This document shows positions 19,520-41,636 of a stretch of 64,000 bases of DNA, in pieces. The DNA is taken from assembly GCA_025558095.1 (NCBI GenBank), contig JAIVFI010000021.1, forward strand, positions 558,001 to 622,000. The letters run 5' to 3'. The position numbers and the translations under genes are program-made. Numbering within the stretch: position 1 is the stretch's first letter; the number at the start of each line of letters is the position of its first letter. Under the pieces are notes generated by a model. That model had not been told where the DNA came from. It searched no databases and saw nothing but the letters and a program-made list of their open reading frames with translations. The DNA comes from Hyaloraphidium curvatum SAG 235-1. Its lineage: Eukaryota > Fungi > Monoblepharomycota.

Positions 19520-20170
19520 CAAGGGATACTACCAACTGCTTAGGAAGACTTATGCGAGGCGGAAGGGCAACAACCTGTTTGGGTACACCCACCTCCTCCA
19601 GCTTCCTCCACAACCTCGGGCGCTCCACCGTGTCAAAGCCTTTGTGAAATCTACAAACACCATGATCAGCTTCTCCTTGCGTGCCTTGGCCAAGGAGAAG
19701 AGCGCCTCAGCGAGGAATACTGCATGAAGGGTCGACCTCCGTGTCCGGAATCCAAACTGCGAGCCTTCCAGCAGCTTGTTGCACTCAGCCCAGGGAGCTA
19801 GCCGAGCGTTCTCCAGTGTCCTCTCTATGCTGCTGCCTCGGTAGCTGCTGTCAGCTAGCCACGCACGTTCTTGGGCCCCTTCTTGTGCAGCATCACCAGC
19901 AGTGTCTGGCCCCAGTCTTGCATGTCGACGCCATTGAGCACGTCATTGAGCAGGTCGACAACAGAGGACGCAACAGTGGTCACGTCTCGAGGCATCGCAC
20001 AACCAATTCGGCTCCGGAAACGGCGTCCTTGCGTTCAAAGCCTCTCGCAGCTCCAGCCGTCCAGCTGCCATCAGCCCCGGACGAGCCGCGTCTTAGCTTT
20101 TCGAAGACGCCCCGGCCCAGCCCGTGGTGGCTGATGCCGCAACTTGTGGCGCAGCCATCTCGGCGCGACG
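19520..20170 (-). mobile_element. Degraded non-LTR (LINE) retrotransposon reverse-transcriptase fragment
   Basis: The minus strand reads, across frameshifts: KLRRGSSGADG, DWGQTLLVMLHKKG, SYRG, NARLAPWAECNKLLEGSQFGFRTRRST..AVF, KLIMVFVDFTKA/FDTVERPRLWRKLEEVGVP. These are classic LINE RT subdomain motifs. Confidence 0.85.
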
Positions 20171-20843
20171 CAGCACCCGGACCCGTCCTCCTTTGCAACA
20201 ACTGCACCTGTCAGAACGAGTGCCGACACGCCACGCACGCCCTGTGGCGCGCGTTTTTCCGGAACACCGTCGTCAAGCGGATCAAGGTCGCGGCATCGGA
20301 GGCATTGCTCTGGATTCCCGCGCTGGTCCCGGCGAACACGGCGTTGAAGGAGCAGAAGCAGAAGCCGCGGGGGTTAGGCGGGCAGAAGGGTGGTCGCCAG
20401 AGGGTGCGAAGCGCAGCGGCGCCGATTGCCGCGGGTCCGGATCCCGGGGAGGGCGACGACGTTTCGAGCGGCGGTGCTTCCGACGGCGTTGCTTCGGACG
20501 GCGACGACGAAGGAGCGCCCTCGGCCAAGCGGCCGAAGCTCGATGATGGCGCCGAGGAGCCGGAGGATGTGTCGGCGGAGGCGGAAGGGGAGCCGGCGAG
20601 TGCGGTGGCGGAGGCGGAGGCGGGCGACCCCGAACGGGTGTTCAGGCTCTTCCGCCACGAGCTCGAGCACCCTCGCTGCCGTCACCAGGGCTGGTCAAAC
20701 TGCGTGTTCGAGGACGAGTACGATCCTTCCGACGAGGAGACGTGGGGCTGGGAAGACCCCGACTGGGAGGACGGCGAATGGGTCGAGCTGTAGATGGAGT
20801 GAAATCGAGGAGATGGAACGCTAGCGACGTCATCGTCTCCCGA
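20171..20843 (+). pseudogene. 5'-truncated copy of the 3' end of the 24996-28686 gene, including the stop codon and about 50 nt of 3' flank
   Basis: Near-identical to 28073-28734, from CAGCACCCGGACCCGTCCTCC to GACGTCATCGTCTCC. Confidence 0.9.
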
Positions 20844-24673: not shown

Positions 24674-24716
24674 TCTCGACTTCCTGAGCTCGGAAATCGC
24701 TGGGAAAACGTCGCAA
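24674..24716 (+). repeat. Left copy of a ~43-bp direct repeat (weaker similarity over about 24610-24740)
   Basis: TCTCGACTTCCTGAGCTCGGAAATCGCTGGGAAAACGTCGCAA versus 29374-29415: 2 substitutions and 1 indel. Confidence 0.85.
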
Positions 24717-24995
24717 ACGATTGCGAGAGAGTGAAATGAAAGACGCAGGATGCATCCGGTGATTTCGAGTTCGGGTCTCTCGGCCCTTGTGGTACAATCG
24801 GCTAGTATCCTGCCCGGCTATCCACACGCTCCCGTGCTTCCTCCAAATGATTGCCTCGCGGTGCATGTATATCGACGCTTTTTTGATCTAGTCAATAGAT
24901 CGTTCGGCGGCGTCGTACTCGTCGGCCGTCGCCTTGTTGACACGTCATCCGATCGGACGCCCCGGAGAAACGAAACGCCATCCCCCTTTGCCGCG

Positions 24996-27900
24996 ATGGA
25001 CCTCGTCGCGGCGTTGACCGCATACGCGGCCGCAATCCGCTTCGACCCGGCTTTCGTCGTCGGAGGCCTCGCCGTGGTGCTGGAGAGCGGGCTGCTCCTC
25101 GGCTTCCGGTTCGGCCCCGCGCCGTCCCTCACGCTGAACATCGGCGGGCCGGGCGGCATCCGGGTCATCGCGCCCGACGAGGAGGTCCACGGCGTGTGTT
25201 ATCTTCAGCTGTGGTTCCCTGCCGACGAGGCGGGGCGGGATCTGTGGCAGCGCTGCCTCGCGGCGAGCGCCCGCAACGATGCCCCAACCGCGGTCACGCT
25301 CGACGGAGCGGCGCTGGAGGCACTATACGGCGGGCAAACCGAAAATACGGAGGCGCGGGAGGCGGCTTTCAAGTACGAGCGGGTCGTTCGGGAAGTCGGA
25401 CGCGTTCCGGACCTCAAGCTCGGCCTCGTCACGGGGCAGCAGAACCCGGTGGTCCTCGACCTCTGGGAAACGATCCTAATCTGGCTCATATGCGCTCTCT
25501 TTGGCGCCAAAGCCAAGAACCTTTCCCCCTACCCCAAGCATTCTTACGTGCGCCGTCCTGGGACGGATGTCGTTTTGGCGCTCGTCGCGGAGCGGGTGCG
25601 CTTTCTCGCCCTTTCCCCTCCGGGCTCCTACCGCCACCTTGGCGCGCCCGGCTTCCACGTCTTGGGACCCGCAGATCGATGGAAGCACCGTTCCGTGGAC
25701 CTTCTGCTGGCCATCTTCGTGCAAGGCGTTCTTGGAGATGTTTTCTCTGGGACTCCGTGGCCAAGGTTTTTGGACTGGTATCGCTCCCTCTCCCTCTCCG
25801 AGCTCATCGACGCGGACCGTGACGTCGGGCGCCACCTGGTCACCGAGACGGGTGCATCCATCCTCATCCATTTCGGCGAGTCTCGGTCCCCTTCCTTCTC
25901 GGTGCCGCCCAACGAGGCGCTTTCGGAGACGCGCGGGCACCTGGCAAGGTGCTACGATTTTTCCATCCGGCGTGTGGAACTTGATGGGGGCGGGGAGGTG
26001 GTTTTCCTGCAGATCGCCACGGTGCACGCTGGCTTTGGGTTCTATGGAACGGCTTTGCGCATGCGCGTCATTGACGTGTTAAGGAGGCTCGCCGATCTGC
26101 TCGAGCTCGTCGTCGCGGAAGAGGAGCGGCTGATGCACGAAGTGGGTTGGGACTTTCCAGCTAGGGGCGCGATCCTGACACCCCTTCCTACCCTTCCCTT
26201 CGTCCCACTCCACAACACAGGATGGACTCCAGCTCCGCTCCTACGCGCTCGCGGAGAGGCTTCTTGGCTTCGCGCAGCCGCTTCTCGGGCCGTACCGCGA
26301 GGCTATTTACGCGCTCGAGGTTGCGGCCGGGGAGCGCGGTTTGGAGCCGCCGCTGCACGAGCTCATCCCTCCCGTCGACCCCCGGAACTACGGGCCTGCG
26401 GATATTGACCTCCTGGTTGCAAACCTGAAGGAGAACCTGGAGAAGCTCGGAGTTGCGCGGCTGGACGAGGTCGCGGAGCTCAAGACGTGGTTCGGCCCGG
26501 ACGCGACTCTGGCGGACGTGGCAGGGGCGAAGCCGGCGCCAGGGACCGCAGCGGACGCCAGCACGGAGGCAGAGGTAGAGCTTGCTTCCGAGGATGAGCC
26601 GTTCGCCGGCGCGGACCGCTCGGACGTCAACGTCGTGCTGGCCCACGCCGCCCCCGACGCCGCTCCTGCGACCGATCCCGCTGGCGTGCAGCCTGGTGCT
26701 CCTGCGGCCCCGGAGAGCATCGAGGAGCGGCTCAGCTACATGCCGCCGGATCGGGGCAAGGATCTTTACCTGCGGCTCCACCAGGAGGCCGGGAGGCGGT
26801 ACCCGGCTTGCGTCGGACGGCGGGGCTTCGATGCGATGGACGAGGGGCGGAAAGCACTGATTCTGGCCGGCATTCTCGCCGAGTGGCGCGAGGAGGACGC
26901 CGAGGCTGCGTACCACCGCCTCGCGACCGGCGTGATGGAGAAGCTCGTCGAGGATGGGCTATTCGATCCGAAGATGGTCTCGCCAGAGGTCGTCCGCAAG
27001 CAGGCCACCTGGCTGTCGGCAATTCTGAGGACCCGGAAGCCGACGCCCGGGGCAACCAGGCCGATTGAGAAACTCTTCTTCACCTGCTGCGGACTCGTCG
27101 CCAGCAATGCTCTATGCGAGCATTCCGAAACGTTTGCGCCGTACCTGGTGCACCCCACGTGTTACGCTCCGAACGACGTCCACCAGGTCACTCCCATCTT
27201 GCTCACCGACAGGTGCAGCACGGGACCGCGCTTCGGATTCGATGCCATACCCTTCGAGTCCGCCGAGCCTGCCTTCCCTCCCGACACCGTCACCTTCCCG
27301 CGGGCCCCACTCCTTCCCACCGCGTTCGACTACTGCGCTTTGGAGCTGGAACGCGAAGGGCCTCGCCTCGTGAACCACCGCCAGCTAGCTCGCTTCGTGT
27401 CAAAGTCGCTCCTACGGCTCGTGGACCTCGCAGACCGTGCGCCAGCCGAGCTGCCTGCGCTCCGCGGCTGCGAGCTCGCCCAGGCCCGCGTGATCGTCGA
27501 CCTTTACGGGGAGGAGTTCATAAGGAAGATCGTTTCCTACCAGCAGGTCACCTTGGGCCCGGAGAAGGGCAAGCATATTTCCTTCGCACTGCTCGTCAAG
27601 CGGCAGCTCGATCTTGTGCTGGGACCTCCCGAGCTCACCCTGTTCGACGCGCGGATGGGATGCAATCTGTACTACTACCGGATCGGGCCGGTTGGGGCGG
27701 AAGGCATCGGGCAGCAGCTCGTGCCAGACTTGGAGTGGGAGGATTTCGGCACGGCCCTGGGCATCCGGCGCGCCGAGGCCAACGCCAAAAGGAAGCCGGA
27801 GAGAAAGTCCGACTTTTCGTGCGCTTGCCCACGCTGCCATGGCGGGCACAGGGGTGACGGAGGCCCGCGGTTGCGGGTCGGACAGCGCGAGCACCCGCTC

Positions 27901-28686
27901 TATCTTTCCGACGCCTCGACCATTGCGGCCCACACGCTGCAGGACGGCGAGTTCCACCTCCTCGTCCAGCGCGACGCTGCCGACGGGCCGCCTTCCGGGC
28001 CTCGTGCTCTCGACGTCGGGCCGCGCGAGGCGGCTGATCCGGTTTGCGATCTTGCCGCGATTGATGAGGCCCCAGCACCCGGACCCGTCCTCCTCTGCGA
28101 CAACTGCACCTGGAAGAACGAGTGCCGACACGCCACGCACGCCCTGTGGCTCGCGTTTTTCCGGAACACCGTCGTCAAGCGGATCAAGGTCGCGTTATCG
28201 GAGGCATCGCTCTGGATTCCCGCGCTGGTCCCGGCGAACACGGCGTTGAAGGAGCAGAAGCAGAAGCCGCGGGGGTTAGGCGGGCAGAAGGGTGGTCGCC
28301 AGAGGGTGCGGAGCGCAGCGGCGCCGATTGCCGTGGATCCGGTTCCCGGGGAGGGCGGTGACGCTTCGGACGGCGGTGCTTCGGACGGCGACGACGAAGG
28401 AGCGCCCGTGGCCAAGAGGCCGAAGCTCGACGGTGGCGTCGAGGAGCCGGTGGATGCGTCGGCGGAGGCGGAAGGGGAGCCGGCGAGTGCGGTGGCAGAG
28501 GCGGAGGTGGAGGATGGCGGCCCTGAACGGTTGTTCAGGCTCTTCCGCGACGAGCTCGAGCACCCTCGCTGCCGTGACCAGGGCTGGTCAAACTGCGTGT
28601 TCGAGGACGAGTATGACTCTTCCGACGAGGAGACCTGGGGCTGGGAAGACCCCGACTGGGAGGAAGGCGAATGGGTCGAGCTGTAG
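24996..28686 (+). CDS. Large orphan protein (~1200 aa): GIY-YIG-like N-domain, UDG-superfamily-like domain, Cys/His Zn motifs, NLS and acidic Trp-rich tail
   Basis: ORFs 24750..26408 and 26341..28686 are joined by phase-0 intron 26142-26220 (GTGGGT..CTGAC..CAG). Motifs CYLQLW, LYGGQTENTEARE, WETILIWLICALFGAKAKN, ILIHFG, ATVHAGFGFY, CACPRCH, CDNC..CRHATH, AKRPKL. The gene itself is well supported; the domain calls are by eye. Confidence 0.65.
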
Positions 28687-29373
28687 ATGGAGTGAAATCG
28701 AGGACATGGAACGCTGCGACGTCATCGTCTCCGATCCGATCCACCGACCACCTCCGGGACGCCGCGATATCCTCGCCAGACGTTTCGAAACCCTGCCAAC
28801 GTGATTGCCTCTACCATGCGGCGTAACTGTCCGCCTGGGCCTCGGCTTCCGGATCCGCAACGACGAGAATAGGGAGTTCGCCGGGTACGCGAGGCACGGG
28901 GTCTTCCGCGACGCCGGTGCGGTCGATGGCGACGTCGGCGTACAGGGGCTGTAGCGAACATCGCCAGTCCGGCGGCCCCGGGCCGCGGACCCCACCCCGC
29001 CCATGCCCACCGCTCGTCCGTCCCGCCTCCGTCCCGCGCCCCGCCCCGCCGAGCGCATGATCCATTGCCTTGCGGTGATTTTGCGGCCGTCGGGCGGGTC
29101 GGCGGACGCCCGAGGAGGGCGCGGGGGCGGGTGGATGTGTGCCGTTTTTCGCGCGCGCTCTGCCCTCACCCGCGCCAGACGGACCCCGCGGGCCGGAACA
29201 ATCGGGAGTGAGAAAATGCCGGATGCTTTTACGCCGATCGCACCGGATTGGCCTCTCCGGGTGCGCTCCCGGGTTGTCCGGCCGCTCCCGATGGTTTGCG
29301 GCGGGGATGCGGGGTTTGTTTTGCAAGCCCTTGGCAGACCAAGCCCTTAGCCTCGCCCCCCTCGCTCCCTCGC

Positions 29374-29415
29374 TCTTGACTTCCCGAGCTCGGAAATCGC
29401 TGGAAAACGTCGCAA
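29374..29415 (+). repeat. Right copy of the ~43-bp direct repeat, about 50 bp past the 3' end of tRNA-Trp
   Basis: TCTTGACTTCCCGAGCTCGGAAATCGCTGGAAAACGTCGCAA. Confidence 0.85.
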
Positions 29416-29462
29416 TGAAGCGCAGGAGTGGAGTGAAGTGTGCAAAATTTTTTGTGGTTTTG

Positions 29463-29535
29463 TGAGGACTGACGGATTTGAACCGCCGACCAATCGATCT
29501 GGAGTCGAACGCGCTGCCAACTGCGCCAAGCCCTC
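29463..29535 (-). tRNA. tRNA-Trp (CCA), intronless
   Basis: Minus strand GAGGGCT-TG-GCGCAGTTGGCAGCGC-G-TTCGA-CTCCAGA-TCGAT-TGGTC-GGCGG-TTCAAAT-CCGTC-AGTCCTC-A folds as a cloverleaf with one U:U pair at the top of the anticodon stem. TTTT pol III terminator at 29447-29444. Confidence 0.93.
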
Positions 29536-30290
29536 TTGAAGGGCATTCTATTACCCAGGGCATCGCGGGCGTGCGGTGTGAACAAATCTGATCTGACTTT
29601 CCTTTACCCGGACCGGGGCGTCGTGCAGGACCTCGTCGCCATGGTTCGTGCACGTGTGCATGGTATTGGATCGGCCCGAAGATACAAAGACCTAGAGCTT
29701 TGAGAGTTCTGTCAGGTATGTATTACGTCGAATGACGCTTGTAGAAGCGCACGGCATTCCGAAACTATCAGAGCGCGGTCGCACGAGCCGAAAGCGCGTA
29801 CACGTCTCCGTTGAAAACCGCGAGCCAATCCACCCGCGAGCTTAATTTTCAAAGTGCAGGCAACGATGTGGGCCAGGAGATCGGTGAGGGGGGTCTTTGT
29901 CCACCATAAATCCGTGGCATGCCCGTCATCCGCTTCCGAGTGCACGCTTTGGTGCCAAGTGGCAGCGATCGGGTCCTCGGGCGGCTAGTCGAATCCGACG
30001 TAGGTACAGCACTATCGGAACGAAGTTTATGCCCTTGCCATTTGTGAGATTCTTGAGATTCTCCGATGACAGCGATGGGAAAGCCTATGCTGCAAGAATG
30101 CATAAGCTTCTTATTCCCCACTGCAAGAATACATACAACACACTGACTGCAAGCCAGGTCCCAAAACGTGATACATGATGTGCTTGCTGGATTTGATTTG
30201 ATTCCACACTCCATCCTCCTTTTTCCATCTTGAACCGTTCCGTTTTCCGCCCTCGTCCTCCATTCGAACTGCATGTCACAACCAGTGGAT

Positions 30291-32700
30291 TTAGGTCGTG
30301 AAGTTGAGCCGCACACTCCCGGCGTCGTAGACGACATCAGCAACTGTGCTGGCAGACACCAGCAGCCACGGCCCAAGCAACGATTTGGCATACGTTGCAC
30401 TAGCCTTGCCTGCCGCATTTGTGGCGTTGGTCTGCAGCAGCTGACCCCAGGCATTGAACGCAATATCGAAACCTTGGAGAGCGGTCGTAGTGAAGGGATC
30501 CGTGAGCGTGGCTGTGAAAAGGGTGTTGGTCCCTCCTGTTGAGGCGCACGGGGGCAAGCTTGACGATCAAGGCTGCTGTGACGTTCGAAGGGCCGACGTC
30601 CTCGCCGCCGGTGAACTCGGCCAGCAGAGTGCCGTTCCCGCCCGGCTGCATGGGGGCGCGGTAGACGAGCGATGCGATCCCGGTGGCGCCCGTCACGTTA
30701 CTGCCGATCGGGGCGCCGTCGAGCGAAAAGGAGATCTGCCTGCCGGCTCCGACCCTGGTCCTGTTTGCGGCAAAAGACAAGGTAGCCGAGATTGTGGCGT
30801 CGCGGCCTTTGGTGCCAGTCACCGCGCTCATCGCAATTGACAAACGGGGACGGACGAAGGGCACCGATCCCGCCGCAGAGCTTCCGAGCGTTGAGCCGTC
30901 GCCTGCCCATGATACATTGATCGGCGTCGGCACAGCGGGGATCGTGTAGGAGAACGAGGCGAGGCCCAGGGAGTTGGTCGTTGCTGCAAGAGTGGCTGCC
31001 TGTCCCTGAGTGGCCAGCACGAGGCGCTTCGCGGCCACCGGTCTGCCCGCCGCATCCGTGAGTGTAGCGTTGATCGCGCCCTTGTCACCCGCTGGTACTC
31101 CGACAGGGAGTTGGAGCGAAATTGCGGTGACCTGGTACACCCGAAGGGTGCCGTTGCGGGAGGATGTGGTGCCGGTGGCCAACGTCGGCAACACAGGGAG
31201 GAGTTGTCCGGCCTTGAGGTCCACAGGGAGCTGCACAGAGCTCCGGGCAGAGCCGCAAGAGTCGGTGATAGATGTACCGGGAACGAGAACGTTGTTGACG
31301 TTGAATGTTACGGCGACACCGGCTGCGGGGGACCCATCGGGATTCAAAACGACCGCCGATATGCCTGCCCGCGTTCCTGCCACGACATTGGAGTCGGCGG
31401 CGGCAACAAAGGTCGGCATAGGGGCCGCACCTGGGCGTAAACGCGATTAGCACAACCAACAAAACGGTGCTTGAGGACGCCAACCGAAGACAAAGGAAGT
31501 TGGGGTCGGGGTGAACGTTGCACTCTGCGTCATCGTTTCCATCATCGCCTCTGTGAGCGTTTCGACGGTGGTTGTCGCTGCATAAGTCTGGAGAAAGCAG
31601 GTGTCGGCGTCTAAAGTGGACGGCGGGAACGATGCATACCATTGTGGCCGCTTCGGACGTCGTGAGAATTTCGGTCGTGCTGGTTTGCGGCGGTTGCCAG
31701 TTGATCGCAATAGAGTACGTGCTTGTGGTTCGACCGTCCGCGGCAATGACACTGACGTAGACCGTGTTGTCGCCGGCCCTGGGCAAGGAGATCGCAGTTG
31801 CAACGTTTGAGATAAGCGTCGTAAAAGGACCAGCAGGATCGTTGAATGTATAGCCAAGCATCGCGCCGACGTCAGTGGTCACAGCCTTGAGCAAGAGTTC
31901 CGAAGTCGGGCCCTGGTACGGGATAGGCCAGAATGTGTAATTGGTAAAGGCGGAGCCGTGAATGACAAACGGTGGCCGCAGAGACCCTTGGTCAAGCACG
32001 AGGTCCGAAAGCGTCGAATCCGAGCTGGGAGGGACGGTGCTGGTCGCGGCAAAGGTCTGGAGGGAGCAAACTTCAGTGCATAAACCGGACGACTGCAAAA
32101 ATGCACACCGTCGTGGCCGCTTCCAATGTCGTAGTCTCCGTCAATGTCTCCGTCACAGTCTCCGTCGTCGTTTTTGTGTCGGGGCAAGCAAAGTTAGTGC
32201 GATCGGGAGTGGGCCAAATGTTGGCTTACCGGAGAAGGGTTGAAGAGCTCTATATCATAGATTACTGGCCCCGAAACTGGATTCAATATGATCCAGATCT
32301 TGTTGTTGCCATAGACCATAGGCACATCTTTCCCAGAACCTGAACTTAACGCCTCGCGGGTGCGGTCTCCATCGGTGGAGTAGAACAGTGTCCCTGACGG
32401 AGTACGGCGAAAAGAAGCTGTGGCAACGTGAGCGCCGAAGCCGGGTCAACAGCCGGATCAAGGGGGCCCAGAGCAGAAACTCCTGCGGCAGCCGTGGGAG
32501 AACGGCGCCTACGATCTCGCGGAGAAGATCGTGAGCACTTGGCTCCAGAAAGCTCCCCTCCGCCCCTCAGGAAGGAGAGCCGCGAACTGATTTCGCCTCG
32601 ACGAAGAACCCCTACACCTTCGGTAAGCAATGGCATGGGCGTGAAGGAGCAACGTCGCTTACCTCGACGAAGGTAACGAGAGCGACGACTCGCCCCGCGG
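30291..32700 (-). CDS. Surface/secreted protein with cadherin-like beta-sandwich and bacterial Ig-like (Big) domains and Thr-rich linkers; apparent frameshift near the 3' end
   Basis: SSDSTLSDLVLDQGSLRPPF..TNYT..ISLPRAGDNTVYVSVIAADGRTTSTYSIAINW; repeated I[N/S]ATL..V..K/R..F..G..T.S/T.G.A units. GT-AG introns. The frame changes at about 30540 with no room for an intron. The 5' end is uncertain. Confidence 0.65.
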
Positions 32701-33239
32701 CGCTCAAGAGCCGTGTTTAAGCGGGGTCAGGGAGTTCGAAGGCGGGAGGGGGGAAAGAAGACGAAGCAGCCACCGCGCTCCTCGTGCTCCTGGGAAGGAA
32801 ATAGTCTTCTCCGCAAATGCCGACTTCATTCGTTGCCCATGTTGTCTCTCCATGCCCTGGCGACGCGGCTGAGCGAGCCCCAAGCCGGGGACGAGGTTCA
32901 AGAAACGCTGTCCGCGCCCCGAAGACGTGCTTCCCCCGCCTCCGCAGCCACCGCGGGGCAGAAAAGCACCGCCATAACATAAAGACGCGTGCTGGAACGT
33001 CTGCAGCGGCCCACGAGACGGTGGAGCGCTGTTCCCGGCGTCGAAGCACCTGGGCCGCGCGAGCGTCTCCCCCGGGCCCCCGGCGCCGTATCCGAGGCCG
33101 CCCACGGCATGGAAAATTCGCAAATAATTCCCTGCGACGGCCTGCACCATCGGCGAGGCCGGGGGAGCACTACAGCAAACAGGTCGGTTGCGAGTGCACT
33201 ATACAGCAGATAGCATGACACGCTCCTGGGGCCGAAAAA

Positions 33240-34038
33240 AGCACCCCCTTACTCCCATACAATGCGAGCCGACACCGTTCCGCTCGTAGCTGGACCGTGC
33301 AGTTTGACCGTGCAGGCTTCTTCCTTAGCTGGGCCAAATGCAGTCAGAGCCAAAGGACGCTCGGTCCTTCCAAACCACCGCCGCGCAACGGATTGCTCCT
33401 GCACCACTTCGTCCACTACCAAAGAGCGATGTTGCAGTACACACCGGCGGGCATAGCCTGCCAAGAGTTTGAGCCGAATTGAGTCGCCGCTGGCCCCTTG
33501 ATGGCGCCCATTGGAGGCACTGGGGTGGTTCAGACAGGCAGGCCGAGGAGGGGCCGTTTCGGAACCTGGCCGATGCTCTCGTAACTGGGCCCTGCTGGGC
33601 GACATCTTCGACCGCAAAACAGAAGTGGCGATATATCAGAGTCATTTCGTGCGCGCGATCGGGTACCTCGGCCAGGATTCGCTTTGAGCTTGGGGAGATG
33701 CGTCCCGACTCCAGCCATTCGGTGACTGTGCGCGCCCCGAAGAGACCGGCGCAAGTCGCCAAGAGGCTGCAAAATGGGGTCGGCATGGGTCATTTGCGAC
33801 ATTTCCATGCTTAAATAGGCCCTTGCGACGGCCGTGCGCGGACTTGCGGAAGCGCGCAACGCGTCGCACAAACGGAGAGGGCTGGTTCGGGGAACCTGTG
33901 TCAACAAGGCAGGCCGGCGGCGGTTGCCCGCGTTCCTGGAATGTGGTTTTGTGGGGTCATCACAAGCATTTGCGGTTTTTAGCGCCCCCCTGGGCGCGCT
34001 GGGGTCGGTTTGGCGTAGGGGGGTTTTGACTCGGTCGG
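33240..34038 (+). repeat. Long direct repeat A (~800 bp), copy 1
   Basis: Highly similar to 39754-40540, e.g. CGAGCCGACACCGTTCCGCTCGTAGCTGGACCGTGCAGTTTGACC... through GGGTTTTGACT. Confidence 0.9.
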
Positions 34039-34699
34039 ACTTCCACCCGCTCAAACGTCGCGAAACGGCCGGCTCTGAACGGGGCTCTCCGCCCCGCGCG
34101 CCATCGCAGCCTCCGAGAACACGGCCCGGCAGTCACATTTCGCGCTCATCTGTCGCGCACGACTCGTTTTGGCGCCGTAGTTTGGCGGCCCGCCCTGCGG
34201 CCCCGGCCGCCGCGCCAGCGCCCGTGGCGGGCAGCGGAGGGGAAAACCAGACGACACTGCGTGAAAAGAGCTCGCAATGGACGGTGCAGGGGACGGCGCC
34301 GGCCGTCCCGCGGCCGGTTCGCGGGCGGTTCGCCGCGCGGCCCGTCGGGCGCCGCGAGCGGGCCAGGTCTCTTCCGCGCCGCCGCTCTGGGCACCAGCTG
34401 CCGGCAGCAACGCAACCGAATGTGCGTGATTCGAGAACGATTGCTCTGTGGCCGGTCGTCTGAGGCGCTTGCTCGGTTCCCGCAGCTGTCATTGACCTGA
34501 CTGGGAACGCTCACGCCGTCGATGCTGTTTGTAGCCCCGCCTGCTCCGCGCGGAGAGCGGTATGCTGACCATGCCCTTTAGCAGCCCGCAGCGGTGCTGC
34601 CGTCGAGCGCTGCGGTCCCGCGCGCCGGCAGCAGGTCGGCTCCTACGGTGCGAAATCCGGGCGTGACGTCGACGTCAGCTCGATCTGAAATTCCTCGCC

Positions 34700-37600
34700 C
34701 GGACAGCGGAAACGTAAGGTGGACGAGGACCAGGACGTGCAGAGAGCTGCTGCGATGGACGTGGACGAGAATGTCGCCGACGAGAATGGCGCTGGTGGTG
34801 GGTATTCAAGCAAGCCGATCGCAGCCTTCCCGTCACCAGCCTTCGCTCCCCGTTCTCCCTCGGCACCCCGCCCCGTCAGCCCGGTCACCAAACGCCGTCG
34901 GAACGCGATCAGCCCCCGGCACCGGCCCCCTGGGTGCATCGTCCGCGGCGCCGCAGCCGCCACACGCGCAACGCACCTTTGCCGACATTGTCGAGCACGG
35001 CACCGCCAATGCTCCCACGAGGCTGTCCCGCACGGAGCGCCACGAATCAGAACTGCGGCGCAAGAAGCAGAGGACGCTCGACTCGCTCGACGACCGCCTC
35101 GCCCGCTGCGTCAATGACATCGCGCCCTACGTGGAAAGGAGGCTCCGGGAGCGCGACGCCGTCGAGGTTTCGCGTGCGATGGTCGCGGCGGCTCTGCAGT
35201 CGGCAGATACTACGGACGACGAGCTGGTGCGGGTGCTGCAGGCGCACATCCACGTGCTGGACGACGTCCGACAGGTCGAACCGTTGCCGGCGGTCGCTCT
35301 AGGGTTCCTCGCGATACCCGGGCTCGTCCGCACGCTGTGCCGAATGGTCGTTGACCCACACACGTTCGATTTCGAGCGGATGCCGGTCGTCGTCGGGAAG
35401 CTCAAGGACGGCGCGCCTTTCGGGGATGGTGCAGGCACGGAGGCGCCGCCCGCGTTTCCCCGTGCGGGCCGGCCGTGGCCGGGCATGGATTCCGACGCCT
35501 TTGCCAAGCAGATCACACAGCAGGAGCCCGAGATCGCAAGCCTTGCTGAACTCTGGGACTTTGAGCTCGTGGACCGCTCGCAAGCACCTGTGAGGTGAGA
35601 GGTTGCCGAAGCCAATAGAATGCATGGCTCTGACCGCCATGACTCTGCTCCGCCAGATCGGATTCGTCGGCGCCCCAGTTCAAAGGATACCTTCGAACGC
35701 GGACGGTTGCGGCCGAGCAACACATGAAGGAGATGCAGCGCTACGCCTCCCGTTATGTCGCGGATGCGCCCTGGGCTGTTTGCTCGTTCAAGGACGCCGA
35801 GGCTGTCGCCGCCGCCGCTGGAGACGGCATTCACGCTCCGTTCACGACCACATACGCCGGAGTGGTGTACAAGAGCGACAAGAGCCCCGCGGACAGGCTT
35901 GTGGAAGCAGCTGCGAAGGACGGAAGCTGCCGGTACACCAACCTCGTCGTGTGCCAGGCCGTCCCACCGGGCACGGAGTCGGGCGCCGCGCAAGCGGAAG
36001 CTGCTGATGCCGCTGGAGACGATGTCGCGGACGACGGGGAACGCGGTTCAGACGAGGAAGATCTTGAACCCGGCGAGGACTTTGACGGTCAGGGAGATCT
36101 GGAAGAGGACGAGGGGGGCATGGACATCGATGCTTTGGCCGCAGCCGCGGGCTGGGTTGCCAACGCCTTCTTCGTGCTCGAGCTGTGGGCAGATCCGAGC
36201 ACCCAGGCCGACTTCTTCCTCAAGCACTCCATCTTTTCCTTCCTGGAGCGGCTATCCGTCGCTGTAGGCGGCTACCAGTCTGCCAACTCGGACGTCGGGG
36301 GATTTTTGCCCGCATGGCGTCTCCGTCCCGAGGTGGCCGAGGTCGGACGCCGGCTCCAGGACGCGCGGCAGGAAGCCCCCTTGGCTACCGACCCTCAGCC
36401 CGGACCTGACCATCCGATGGTGCGGGCTTTGGACGACCTGTTCGGCGACTCGGGTGCGGGTTTCTATGCTGCTTTTGGCTCGTTGGGTTCAAAGGTCCCT
36501 CGTCCTACCGTGGACATTTACCGACGGCAGCTCACCGAGCCCATTGCCACGGTACACGGGATTCAGGTCGGGATGGTTGCCGCCAAGGACGTCACGGCAC
36601 GTGCTCAGGCGAATGCAGGGTCTTTCTATAGCCCTTTTGAGGGTCGTGGGCCGAGGATCACCAGCGCGGCATTGCTACGTGGTCTTCGCCGTCAAGCCGA
36701 CGGCGCTTCCGTCGCAGAACGCCTTCTGTGCCTCTACCAGTCCCTGAAGAAGCTGCTCCCGCCCTTCGTGGACCTGATCCTGATAACCATTCTGTGCCGC
36801 CGCAAGGACAAGCTGTACCTTGCATTTCGGTTCTTTGCAAGGGTTCTGAAGATCCTTCGGCCGCTCGCGCTTCTGTCAGTCAGTTCGCTGACCACAACTG
36901 TGTTGGTCAACGGCTGTTTCGGCCAGGATTTGGACGCCCTGAACGACTCTGAAGCGTCGCTTGAGTGCCAGAAGAGGCGCTTCGCCGCGGCAGGAGAACG
37001 AATTGAGCTTGCTGGCAGTCTACTTGTGTGCCGGATTGGACATGGTCAAGGAGAGCTCACAGTCACTGTTCCTGTTGGCCATGGAGGCGCCCTATCTCAC
37101 GATCCGACTTTCGGACCCATCCTCTACAACCTGAACGAGCTCATTGTCGAGGAGTTCCAGGAGCTGACATATTTCCTCCACGAATGTCTTTTGCTGCCCG
37201 AGGTACGTGCGGCCGTTCCTCGCAAGAGGCTGTCTGGAGCTGACAGGCTCCTTTCACCTGCAGTCTCCCTTCCCTGAGCTGCTCAAAGCTCCCGACTCGA
37301 GATACAAAGCTCTGCTGCATCTGCGCGATTGCTTCGCAGACGCAGCTTTGGATGACGGGCTCTGTCGACTCCTCCAGGGCATCAAGGCCGAGGCCATCGA
37401 CGCGTTCCACTGCATTCGAGGCGCCCGCATGTGCTCGGCGTCCGCGAGGAAAGCGGGCCGCCGGGCGGACGTCGCGGCTCTCTTTGCTCTGGCGGCCGGA
37501 GACGCTCGTTCCGCGACTTGCTACGTGACATCCGGCGAATCCGTTGCGGTGGTGGCTTCACAGCCAGTCGCGGCGGTCTCTCGGCGGCCGCTCGATTTGA

Positions 37601-39039
37601 ACCGCCTCCTACACTTCCAACCTGACCGCTACCTGTCTTCTTGCGACGTTGCTGCAGTCGCAACTCTGCCTCCGCTCCCTCCGGGACAGAAGCTCGTGCA
37701 GCCTCTAACGGCCCAGGGACCGCGAAACTCCCCGGAGAGGGATCTGCAAGTACTCGTCTTGCGCCACCTTGCGGCTACCAGCGAGCTGCACCTGGCCCGC
37801 CAGAATGGGAATTCCTCGCCGATGGCGTGGCTCGTGCGACCCAAGGCCGCCCTCGACCCGTGGTCCCTCGGACCCGCAACGCACGTCGATCCCTTTAGCG
37901 TCGACTTTGCGGAGTTTATCAAGGGGGTTACACCCGGCGCAGCTTTTGCTAAGGCTGTCGGGGGTTGGAAGTGGGATTCGCGGCCTTCGGACGGCGTGGG
38001 CGATCGCACTGCAAGTTCGTTCGAGCGAACCCTAGCCGTTGGCATGACGGCCAAGCGGGTGGCCGGCAACCCTGCATGGGTGTCGAATTTCGTCTGGGAC
38101 AGCTTGATTGCGATGACGGCTCCTACCTACCCCAACGCCAAAGTACCTGATGCACTGCAGTATCGCTGGTGTGCCTGCCCGGCATGCTTGTTGTGCTTTT
38201 TGGACAACCGAGACGGCGGAGCACACCTCGCCAAGGACTGCTCTGCGGGCGGGCACAATGGCGCCGGCAACCGCGACTTTCCCAAACACTACTGCGTGTT
38301 TCCACACGATCTTCCTGAGCTCGAACAGCTCACCATTCCGGAAGCCTATCGGGACCGGCTCCGCATGCTCGCCGTCACCGACATCTTCCCAAATGGCTCT
38401 CCCGCGTTTGCAGGCCTCTCGGCCGAATTCCAGACCCTGGTTCGGACGTATGGAAGCCTTCGGATCCTTGCTCGTACCGTGGAGAGCGTCGGGAACGCAG
38501 CGGAGCGCCGGAAGGAGAACCAGGCATACCTGGAAAGGGCTGCACGGGACCGACTGCTGAAGGCATACCTCTACCTCGGCAGGCCTTCGGAAGTCCTGCA
38601 ACAACCCGAAGCGCTCAGGCGCAGCGGACCTTGTCCCATTGCTTCGACCCTGCGCACTCCAGGTCAGCTTGCCAACCCCCTGTGGCCGTTGGCAAACTCC
38701 GAGTGGCGTGGCACCAAGCGCATGAAATCCCTGTGCTACAGACTCGGAACGGGCGTCGGTATCGGATTGTATACGTGCGATGTGTCGGGCTGCACGGATC
38801 TGACCAAGAAGTACGTCTCTGGGTACCGGCTCGATTCGCAGTTCCAGCCCTACTGCAACAAAGGGCACCGAAAGACGACGATCAGGACCAGCCAGCGTAT
38901 TCCCAACTTCTGGATGCTGGAACCCATCGTTCGGATCGAGTTGATGCGGATTTGGGCGAACCCGGCGGACCCTCTTCACGCCGATCTGGGCGTGAATCCG
39001 GAGGGCGACGAGGCATGGGATGTGGACGTGGACGAATGA
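34700..39039 (+). CDS. Large orphan protein (~1400-1500 aa): GIY-YIG-like, UDG-superfamily-like, CACPxC and CDxxxC..CxxxH Zn motifs, acidic Trp tail
   Basis: ORFs 34594..35598, 35724..37277 and 37207..39039 are joined in frame by introns 35595-35656 and 37203-37263. Motifs FKGYLR, TYAGVV..SPADRL, LERLSVAVGGYQSANSDVGG, IQVGMVAAKD, VLKILRPLALLSVSS, VPVGHGGALSHDP, WCACPAC, YTCDVSGC, YCNKGH. The 5' exons are uncertain. Confidence 0.65.
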
Positions 39040-39753: not shown

Positions 39754-40540
39754 GAAAACACCCGTCCCAACAATCCGAGCCGACACCGTTCCGCTCGTAG
39801 CTGGACCGTGCAGTTTGACCGTGCAGGTTTCTTCCTTAGCTGGGCCAAATGCAGAGCCAAAGGACGCTCGGTCCTTCCACACCACCGCCGCGCAACGGAT
39901 TGCTCTTACGCCACCTACCAAAGAGGGATGCTGCAGTGCACACCGGCGGGCATAGTCTGCCAAGAGTTTGAGCCGAATTGAGTCGCCTGGCCCGTTGATG
40001 GCGCCCATTGGAGGCACTGGGGTGGTTCAGACAGGCAGACCGAGGAGGGGCCGTTTCGGATGCTCTCGTAACTGGGCCCTGCTGGGCGAAATCTTCGACC
40101 GCAGAACAGAAGTGGCGATGTATCAGAGTCATTTCGTGCGCGCCATCGGGCACTTCGGCCAGGATTCGCTTTGAGCTTGGGGAGATGCATCCCGACTCCA
40201 GCCATTCGGTGACTGTGCGCGTCCCGAAGAGACCGGCGCAAGTCGCCAAGAGGCTGCGAAATGGGGTCGGCATGCGTCATTTGCGACATTTCCATGCTTA
40301 AGCAGGCCCTTGCGACGGCCGTGCGCGGACTTGCGAAGCGCGCAACGCGTCGCACAAATGGAGAGGGCTGGTTCGGGGAACCTGTGCCCACAAGGCAGGG
40401 CATCCCATCGAGGCCGGCGGCGGTTGCCCGCGTTACTGGAAAGTGTTTTTGTGGTCATCACCAAGCATTTGCACTTTTTGGCACTCCCCCTGCGGCGCTG
40501 GGGTCGGTTTGGCGATCGCGGCAGGGTTTTGACTAGGTCG
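39754..40540 (+). repeat. Long direct repeat A, copy 2
   Basis: Aligns to 33240-34038 with substitutions and small indels. Confidence 0.9.
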
Positions 40541-40599
40541 TATCCAATCACCTTGATCACGCCTCCCTCTCTTACCGGGTTTCGCTCCGTCCCATGCTC

Positions 40600-40811
40600 G
40601 CACCCCGCCCCGTCAGCCCGGTCACCAAACGCCGTCGGAACGCGATCAGCCCCCGGCACCGGCCCCCTGGGTGCATCGTCCGCGGCGCCGCAGCCGCCAC
40701 ACGCGCAACGCACCTTTGCCGACATTGTCGAGCACGGCACCGCCAATGCTCCCAAGACGCTGTCCCGCGCCAAGCGCCGCGAATCGGAGCTGCGGCGCAA
40801 GAAGCAGAGGA
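40600..40811 (+). pseudogene. Copy of an internal 5' coding segment (34863-35074) of the 34.7-39.0 kb gene
   Basis: GCACCCCGCCCCGTCAGCCCGG...CGCAAGAAGCAGAGGA is near-identical to 34863-35074 and encodes HPAPSARSPNAVG..RRKKQR. Confidence 0.9.
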
Positions 40812-41636
40812 TGCGATCTATTAGATCGCCTCCTCGGGACGGGTTGCCCACTGCAGGATTCGGCCCTGACGGCCCGCGCTTTGCCCCGCCTAAGCGCCGC
40901 AATCCCGGCGCCGGTGTGAGGAAACTCGAATTTTGGGTCGTGGGTGGGACTGCTGCGGGTTTGGGGTGCGCCCTGATCGGCCGTCGCCTCAGTGCAACCG
41001 AACGGGGGGGCACTCCACGGACGGCCGTCGACGTTGATACAATCCGTGTTTCTTCATCCTGAGCCCAAGCGATGTATCGCGCGGTGTCAACAAGCAGCTT
41101 GAACGGCGTCGTGCACGGTGAACTGGCGGAAAGCCTTTGATCTGGAAGGGTCGGTGCATCGATCCCTCAATCACGTAAATCAGCCTTAGTCGTCGGGCGA
41201 CGCAGAGAGAGCAGAGCAGATCGGGTATCTACCCACATTGATCTGGCATTAGGGGATTATGAAGCGCGCGTGGAATGCTAACCGGGACACGGCTGAGGAT
41301 GAGCATCAATCGCTCCAACTGCAGCCTTCTGCTTCATACTGTTTCTAGCTCCCGCGTTCTCCCGCCGCGACATCGCATCCCCAGCCCATCCCGGCGCTAC
41401 CGCGTCCTGGGAAGGCGTCGATCGTTACCGGCGTGCCCCTCGCGGGGGAATGCGCGGTCTCATCGCTGTTTGCTTTTCATTAGGCGTAGAATCATGCTTT
41501 GTTTCACGCTTTAGACTATAAGCCGTCCGTTCTCTCTCGTCGCGTTCTTGGCTTTGTCAAGCAAGTCTGGCGGGAGGGTTCCGCGACAACACCCCACCCC
41601 CACCTCTGCACAGAACGGCCAGCACGGCAGTCAAAG

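Follow-up and report, generated by a model that had tools for sequence, protein, structure and literature searches.

Nucleases of the GIY-YIG type are recognized by a short set of residues: a tyrosine, a Tyr-x-Gly, an arginine about 10 residues later, a metal-binding glutamate and an asparagine located some 12-15 residues after this glutamate. The catalytic set of I-TevI consists of Y6, Y17, R27, E75 and N90 (UvrC was likewise used for comparison), and in canonical members, whose core is a three-stranded sheet with helices on its flanks, the strands of GIY and YIG pair in a hairpin with 10-11 residues from one to the other. Enzymes of the uracil-DNA glycosylase (UDG) superfamily have an alpha/beta/alpha fold built on a central parallel sheet and display a motif A (GQDPY, GINPG, GEAPG) that follows strand 1 and a motif B (HPS...) that precedes the last helix. 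CMoRE, in which a GIY-YIG domain is linked to a sensor of modified cytosine, is restrained by an acidic autoinhibitory loop placed over the active site (PMC12923530). The present work deals with a window of 64,000 nucleotides from the fungus Hyaloraphidium curvatum (contig C21:558001-622000 of an assembly of 31.9 Mb) and with two large genes that it contains, named here gene 1 and gene 2. Gene 2 probably belongs, in our opinion, to a family of early-diverging fungi that is rare, fast-evolving and as yet undescribed, in which a GIY-YIG-type endonuclease domain would be followed directly by a domain with the UDG-superfamily fold, then by a long C-terminal region with Cys/His motifs.

The gene 2 family and its domains

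Both genes belong to the forward strand, with the following limits.

24750-28686, + strand: gene 1 (P0001, DFJ74DRAFT_677340), annotated as a hypothetical protein of 1285 amino acids
24750 to ~26146 and ~26220 to 28686, + strand: exons of gene 1, with one intron at ~26147-26219
~34577-39039, + strand: gene 2 (P0002, KAI9018432.1), annotated as a hypothetical protein of 1426 amino acids
~34577-34675, 34708-35594, 35657-37202 and 37264-39039, + strand: exons of gene 2, placed by tblastn of P0002 on the window

That two large multi-exon genes exist at these positions, as proposed in an initial annotation, is borne out by the annotated models and by a base composition that is coding-like in all exons of both genes (GC content of 0.69-0.81 at the third codon position, GC3, vs 0.46-0.52 at the second, GC2). 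The introns of gene 2 at 35595-35656 and 37203-37263 display GT..AG ends, read directly from the sequence. Every motif quoted in the initial annotation is found at the place where it had been located and, as was also claimed there, the two genes have no similarity to one another at the nucleotide level; BLAST shows none either. The end of gene 1 at 28686 stands as well, while the start proposed for it, 24996, turns out to be the internal Met83 of a protein annotated to begin at 24750. Pfam and PHROG scans of both genes, all exons included, gave no match. In the searches reported here, the queries were the database-annotated proteins (P0001, P0002 and P0003) or single exons, rather than coding sequences that we had joined ourselves.

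Gene 2 had been described as an orphan, and this label proved to be wrong: it has relatives in two fungal phyla, as established by exhaustive profile search. Indeed, an exhaustive hmmsearch of 1.84 billion representatives, with a profile made of gene 2 exon 3 and of its paralogue on contig C46, recovered 10 proteins at E <= 1e-3, namely gene 2, the C46 model, five proteins from Gonapodya sp. JEL0774, two from Mortierella alpina and one from a metagenome. These proteins, fungal or metagenomic, are all labelled 'hypothetical', and scanning the members of the family found neither a Pfam domain nor a PHROG match in them. The C46 paralogue is collinear with gene 2, with ~30% identity. A profile search of the genome added a third H. 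curvatum member, on contig C30, which brings the family to 11 members in our alignments.

C30:573752-575773 (L018 4253-6274), strand not stated: family member of the 'short' type, a single open reading frame (ORF) of 673 amino acids

The range of the family comprises Hyaloraphidium and Gonapodya, both Monoblepharidomycetes, and Mortierella. Gene 2 looked like an orphan while its family is detectable only through exhaustive profile search: a word-indexed protein search with the family alignment returned gene 2 alone, which shows that this type of search is blind at 20-25% identity. The profile of the whole family had no match among PDB sequences. In the phylogenetic tree, where the C46 paralogue is represented by its two pieces, set in a single row with X between them, two clades are seen: gene 2 and C46 group with the five Gonapodya proteins, and the C30 member groups with the metagenome protein and with the two from Mortierella. 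The C30 member sits on a very long branch (2.76), away from gene 2. The expansions are lineage-specific, copies within one genome being 16-35% identical in the alignment, and terminal branches amount to about 1 change per site, so that the family is either old or fast-evolving.

The protein comprises two conserved domains, the first of which includes an acidic loop, and a long C-terminal region. The confidence of the models is given below as the predicted local distance difference test (pLDDT).

35673-36302, + strand (P0002 ~326-535): GIY-YIG-like nuclease domain, from invariant columns, AlphaFold2 models and VIA
35979-36137, + strand (P0002 ~428-480): acidic low-confidence loop of ~50 residues within this domain, from the alignment and pLDDT
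36408-37184, + strand (P0002 ~571-829): domain with the UDG-superfamily fold, from VIA, Foldseek, ESM Atlas and conserved columns
37264-39036, + strand: C-terminal region of ~590 amino acids, from alignments

In the first domain, the residues that are wholly or nearly invariant in the 11 members are Y331-x-R333, Y349, D356, Y386-x-G388, R400, D404, R412-x-x-N415, E517 and N530-x-x-x-G534-G535. Counted by column, Y331 is found in 10/10 members, G388 in 10/11, and Y386, R400, E517 and N530 in 11/11 each. The position of R400 is 12-14 residues past the Tyr-x-Gly and that of N530 is 13 residues past E517, an order and a spacing which, at the level of aligned sequences, match the GIY-YIG catalytic set. 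The motifs GYLR, YAG...R and LERL...N of gene 2, read as a GIY-YIG signature in the initial annotation, coincide with these family-invariant residues.

AlphaFold2 models were built from alignments of 11-12 sequences, for the two domains together and for the first domain alone. Both models display a strand, a two-helix insert, a strand, two helices, the acidic disordered loop, a strand and a helix. The core elements of the first domain (E6-17, E60-70, H76-86, E166-174 and H190-206 in the numbering of the model) come in the order strand, strand, helix, strand, helix, which is that of the GIY-YIG fold, with moderate support (low Z, pLDDT ~63). The insert between strands 1 and 2, residues 339-374, is made of two helices and carries the invariant Y349 and D356. 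The acidic loop, where pLDDT is below 50 at model residues 108-153, is present in gene 2 and C46 of Hyaloraphidium and in the Gonapodya members, and absent from the Mortierella and C30 members. When the domain-only model was aligned by VIA to 48,161 PDB representative chains, the following rows were of interest.

Rank 1: I-TevI catalytic domain 1ln0_A, Z 4.9, 87/92 aligned, model residues 6-212 on chain residues 2-93
Rank 2: CMoRE/PD-T4-3 9u75_A, a GIY-YIG restriction enzyme specific for 5-hydroxymethylcytosine (5hmC), Z 3.9, 85 aligned
Rank 3: 6qv5_A, the best unrelated row, Z 2.9, 42 aligned, on the helical insert only
Rank 19: T4 EndoII 2wsh_A, GIY-YIG, Z 2.4, 90 aligned
Rank 46: UvrC 1ycz_A, GIY-YIG, Z 2.2, 72 aligned

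The best structural matches of the model are GIY-YIG nucleases, in line with what had been proposed from the motifs of gene 2. In the two-domain model, I-TevI is the sole match to the part made of the first domain. If, as we assume, the residues of I-TevI are numbered as given above, the ends of its alignment are compatible with Y331 falling on Tyr6 and N530 on Asn90. All five signature residues are present, strands 1 and 2 being separated by a helical insert that is unusual, and the predicted models make it likely that this domain has both the fold and the active site of a GIY-YIG-type nuclease.

Among PDB sequences, the best match of the domain-1 profile is to residues 452-526 of E. coli Pol I Klenow, at an insignificant E of 0.7; it covers P0002 333-405 (window ~35694-35912) with the pattern R-x-L...EA...Y...YP...Y...R. 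Since no polymerase appears among the rows of the domain-only structure search, we rejected a relation with Pol I Klenow and attributed the match to chance. As for the Pfam model PF01541, it matches one locus only in the genome (C28:296275-296445, L024; 30.9 bits), which may, we presume, be a candidate SLX1-type gene, and it does not see the gene 2 family.

The UDG-superfamily fold of the second domain is well supported by its predicted structure. The best VIA match is the family 4 UDG of T. maritima (1l9g_A), with Z 11.0, an rmsd (root-mean-square deviation) of 3.8 and 178/191 aligned residues; then come UdgX (Z 9.4), family 5 UDG (8.3), MUG (7.6), SMUG1 (7.4) and TDG (6.8), the best eight rows all belonging to the UDG superfamily. 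With Foldseek against the PDB, family 4 UDGs and UdgX account for all of the top 35 matches (best E 3.4e-3, probability 1.0), and TDG structures come lower in the ranking. From the ESM Atlas we obtained a cluster of type-4 UDGs, PF03167, with a template modelling (TM) score of 0.61, and the BFVD matches are phage UDGs and UDG-like domains of phage DNA polymerases.

The residues conserved in this domain are G621, K630-D631-x-T633, G649-x-x-P652, P689-x-x-D692, L717...P722, G797 and D802-P803. Placed on the secondary structure, K-D-[VI]-T (630-633) and G649-x-x-P652 come after strand 1; L717...P722, which appears in the initial annotation as LKILRPLALLSV, precedes the third strand; and [H/D]-P-G-x3-[H/Y]-D802-P803 precedes the last helix. 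The motif of gene 2 that had been likened to those of UDGs lies inside a clear UDG-superfamily fold, and the likeness is therefore upheld.

In the C-terminal half, which can be aligned in full-length members, we observe two loose patterns, C-x2-4-C...C...H and C..C...H-x-C, the latter seen in most of these members, and a conserved end, W-x-L...E...N-x-x-D. The Cys/His clusters of gene 2 are CACPAC, at 38170, and CDVSGC...CNKGH, at 38776-38868. CxCPxC is confined to gene 2, with CHCTRC in C46, and is not found in the remaining family, so that zinc motifs cannot be retained as a shared family trait.

Possible function of the gene 2 product

CMoRE is an example of a nuclease coupled to a sensor; gene 2 appears to combine a fold of the base-flipping type with an acidic loop in its nuclease-like domain, and it is on this analogy that we propose a coupling of base recognition to incision. 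The domain with the UDG fold would read an unusual, damaged or modified base by flipping it out, perhaps excising it once flipped, and this reading would guide the nuclease attached to it, which would cut the DNA in the vicinity. The gene 2 product might then be a lesion- or modification-directed endonuclease, involved in repair or in genome defence, two roles which the present data do not allow us to tell apart. This mechanism, base reading plus incision, is the most likely one that we can infer by analogy. A more specific scenario, which we find rather improbable, would see the protein as a modification- or lesion-directed restriction-like nuclease made of a single polypeptide, a eukaryotic, fungal counterpart of the bacterial type IV systems, of which CMoRE is one: the UDG-fold reader of a non-canonical base (for example uracil, a cytosine that is oxidised or methylated, or a hypermodified base of viral origin) would license an autoinhibited GIY-YIG nuclease against foreign or damaged DNA, and gene 1 would be a more diverged member of the same arms race.

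Several observations weigh against such a combination of domains. The AlphaFold2 models, built from few sequences, have a moderate confidence (mean pLDDT 63-65, predicted TM score, pTM, 0.56-0.60). The match of the first domain to I-TevI has a Z below 5 and an rmsd of 4.0, Foldseek returned no match for the model of this domain, and Pfam, PF01541 included, matched none of the 11 domain-1 sequences even at E <= 10. Moreover, Y331 and Y386 are 55 residues apart, vs the canonical 10-11, and the hairpin typical of these nucleases is not found. In the second domain, UDG motifs A and B cannot be recognized in their canonical form, and the histidine of the HPG motif is substituted in several family members, so that the domain may only bind DNA; neither PF03167 nor any other Pfam UDG model matches the full-length members. 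One may imagine a protein where the UDG-like fold is real and the first domain is not a nuclease, the whole being a non-catalytic factor that binds DNA or chromatin, or else a glycosylase alone; the weak structural match, the Foldseek and Pfam results, the distance between the two Tyr strands and the fact that the best PDB-sequence match is the insignificant one to Klenow would all fit this picture. We nevertheless consider it unlikely, for the five GIY-YIG signature residues are invariant and in canonical order, with a canonical distance of 13 residues between Glu and Asn, four different GIY-YIG structures were recovered, two of them as the best two rows, and I-TevI came out on top again, independently, with the two-domain model.

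Gene 1, partial copies and the question of mobility

The initial annotation had seen in gene 1 a divergent paralogue of gene 2, with the same motifs in the same order and the same architecture. This view found no support, since homology was not detected by any sequence method. Between the two proteins, Smith-Waterman scores compared with shuffles gave z ~0, vs z 34 for the control pair of gene 2 and C46, and the profile-profile alignment of gene 1 with gene 2 or its family by hhalign (three runs) reached a probability of at most 1%. Against the family, phmmer found no match of gene 1 to the 11 members, tblastn against all family loci stayed at chance level, and a search of the whole genome with the family profile did not recover gene 1. 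With a hidden Markov model (HMM) for each of the three parts (domain 1, domain 2, C-terminal region), gene 1 did not score above 2000 shuffles of itself, and the signatures that are invariant in the family (Y-x-R, R-x-x-N, N-x3-G-G, K-D-x-T, D-P) are missing from it. On its own account, gene 1 returned only itself from two word-indexed protein searches, one with its C-terminal and one with its N-terminal part; the ESM Atlas feature search, with the whole protein and with residues 83-500, gave no usable match; and elsewhere in the genome it is found only as a partial 3' copy. As judged from the amino acid sequences, gene 1 appears to be a separate, lineage-specific gene, and its likeness to gene 2 seems to be a matter of short motifs, their common order being no better than chance in the shuffled-HMM, Smith-Waterman and hhalign comparisons.

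The partial copies that had been reported near both genes do exist.

20171-20822, + strand: partial copy of the 3' end of gene 1, ~91% DNA identity, open inside ORF 19681-20793
39770-40814, + strand: truncated tandem repeat of the region upstream of gene 2 and of part of its exon 2 (copying 33259-34015 and 34863-35077), in two pieces, 39770-40514 and 40600-40814

Compared with gene 1, the copy has an insertion of 15 nt and a deletion of 6 nt, neither of which shifts the frame. The ORF that holds it codes for 370 amino acids, with an N-terminal part that is unrelated to gene 1; instead of a dead fragment, we may have here a chimeric gene. The copy runs on for ~50 nt beyond the stop codon and ends there with no poly(A) tract. 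We considered whether the 3' end of gene 1 had been retrocopied by a long interspersed nuclear element (LINE) and rejected this, no poly(A) tract being present; for the same reason we treat the copy as a segmental duplicate. The 757-bp unit located upstream of gene 2 is found at one other place only in the genome, shortly downstream of the gene, where it opens the truncated tandem copy; the two thus form a local tandem pair.

The surroundings of the genes were inspected for signs of mobility. Neither gene, nor any copy in the family, is surrounded by terminal inverted or long terminal repeats, and Pfam scans found no transposase, reverse transcriptase or integrase domain. Three Gonapodya members are solitary genes located beside housekeeping genes (among them eIF2D, a DBP10/Urb2-type helicase gene and Utp12); both copies of Mortierella, and one of those of Gonapodya, are on short contigs, where no element structure was seen. 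Among the Gonapodya neighbours (L022 21232-24022, L023 14896-16890) there are several large hypothetical proteins without a Pfam domain, and tblastn found in them no resemblance to gene 1. We also noticed that gene 1 is flanked by a 34-nt direct repeat, 91% identical, at 24674-24707 and 29374-29407, the second copy being ~55 nt from a tRNA-Trp gene (29462-29535, - strand); this repeat is too short to be interpreted, and no integrase-like gene lies between its copies.

Two other accounts of the locus have to be weighed in this light. That genes 1 and 2 are very divergent paralogues, sharing GIY-YIG, UDG-like and zinc modules, would agree with the loosely similar short motifs which gene 1 carries in the same order, with the alike relative position of CxCxxC (residue 998/1285 in gene 1, 1138/1426 in gene 2), with the mere 6 kb between the genes, and with a weak collinear hhalign match upstream of CxCxxC (P0001 838-901 vs gene 2 exon-4 residues 165-231; E 0.05, probability 1%). 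Paralogues in the family being only 16-35% identical, it must be said against our own separation of the two genes that divergence is fast enough for a distant relative to escape sequence methods. Yet scores at or below those of its own shuffles with all three regional HMMs, the z ~0 set against the z 34 of gene 2 and C46, the null phmmer and genome-wide profile searches and the missing invariant signatures make us think a kinship of gene 1 with gene 2 quite improbable. Still less credible is the idea that the genes are the cargo or the enzymes of a selfish mobile element, similar to homing endonucleases or to a new DNA transposon. The commonness of GIY-YIG domains in homing endonucleases, the patchy and multi-copy character of the family, its copies on short contigs and the partial copies near both genes would speak for it; against it stand the missing terminal repeats around all copies, the missing transposase, reverse transcriptase and integrase domains, a 757-bp repeat that is just a local tandem pair, within-genome copies that are far from near-identical, and the three single Gonapodya genes among housekeeping ones. 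The mobile-element idea of the initial annotation was given up on account of such features: what we have here is a family of chromosomal genes undergoing diversification, rather than a transposon.

Comparison with known systems

With family 4 and 5 UDGs and UdgX (1l9g, 4zbx, 2d3y, 6ail), gene 2 appears to share a fold that extends across almost the whole glycosylase, and its strand followed by 'RPL-x-V' and its late [H/D]-P-G...H-D-P would stand, from the order of the secondary structures, at the places of strand 3 and motif B. It differs from these enzymes by an identity of ~8-10%, by the lack of a match to PF03167 and of conserved Fe-S cysteines (none was found in the UDG-fold domain), by a motif A (GEAPG) and a motif B (HPS) that are non-canonical, and by its fusion to a nuclease-like domain. 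I-TevI, through its catalytic domain, offers the best structural match to the first domain of gene 2 (87/92 aligned); in contrast to homing endonucleases of this type, gene 2 has no intron or intein context, no DNA-binding domain of the I-TevI type and no signs of mobility, its family consisting of divergent chromosomal genes with spliceosomal introns.

No fusion of a GIY-YIG domain with a UDG fold was found in the literature searched, and no curated family model captures the combination. What we describe is a new domain combination and a new family, built from known folds. Should the two domains cooperate, this would be a new eukaryotic way to couple base recognition to DNA incision, with possible roles in repair, in the processing of epigenetic marks or in antiviral defence in early-diverging fungi.

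The closest parallel in organization is found in CMoRE/PD-T4-3 (9u75), UvrC and plant MSH1, where, as proposed for gene 2, a GIY-YIG-type domain is N-terminal to a separate domain that reads a feature of DNA. Gene 2 keeps, as they do, the Tyr, Tyr-x-Gly, Arg, Glu and Asn residues. Unlike them, it codes for a eukaryotic protein, with a length of 1000-1400 amino acids and a C-terminal extension of ~590 amino acids, its GIY and YIG strands are set 55 residues apart by a helical insert, and it has no Pfam match. The sensor differs as well: in place of the C-terminal domain of CMoRE, of the MutS module of MSH1 or of the domains of UvrC, gene 2 would use a UDG-superfamily fold. With CMoRE, which is the second-best structural match of its first domain, it further shares an acidic loop within the nuclease-like domain, and it could, as has been proposed for CMoRE, yield a modification-specific nuclease reagent.

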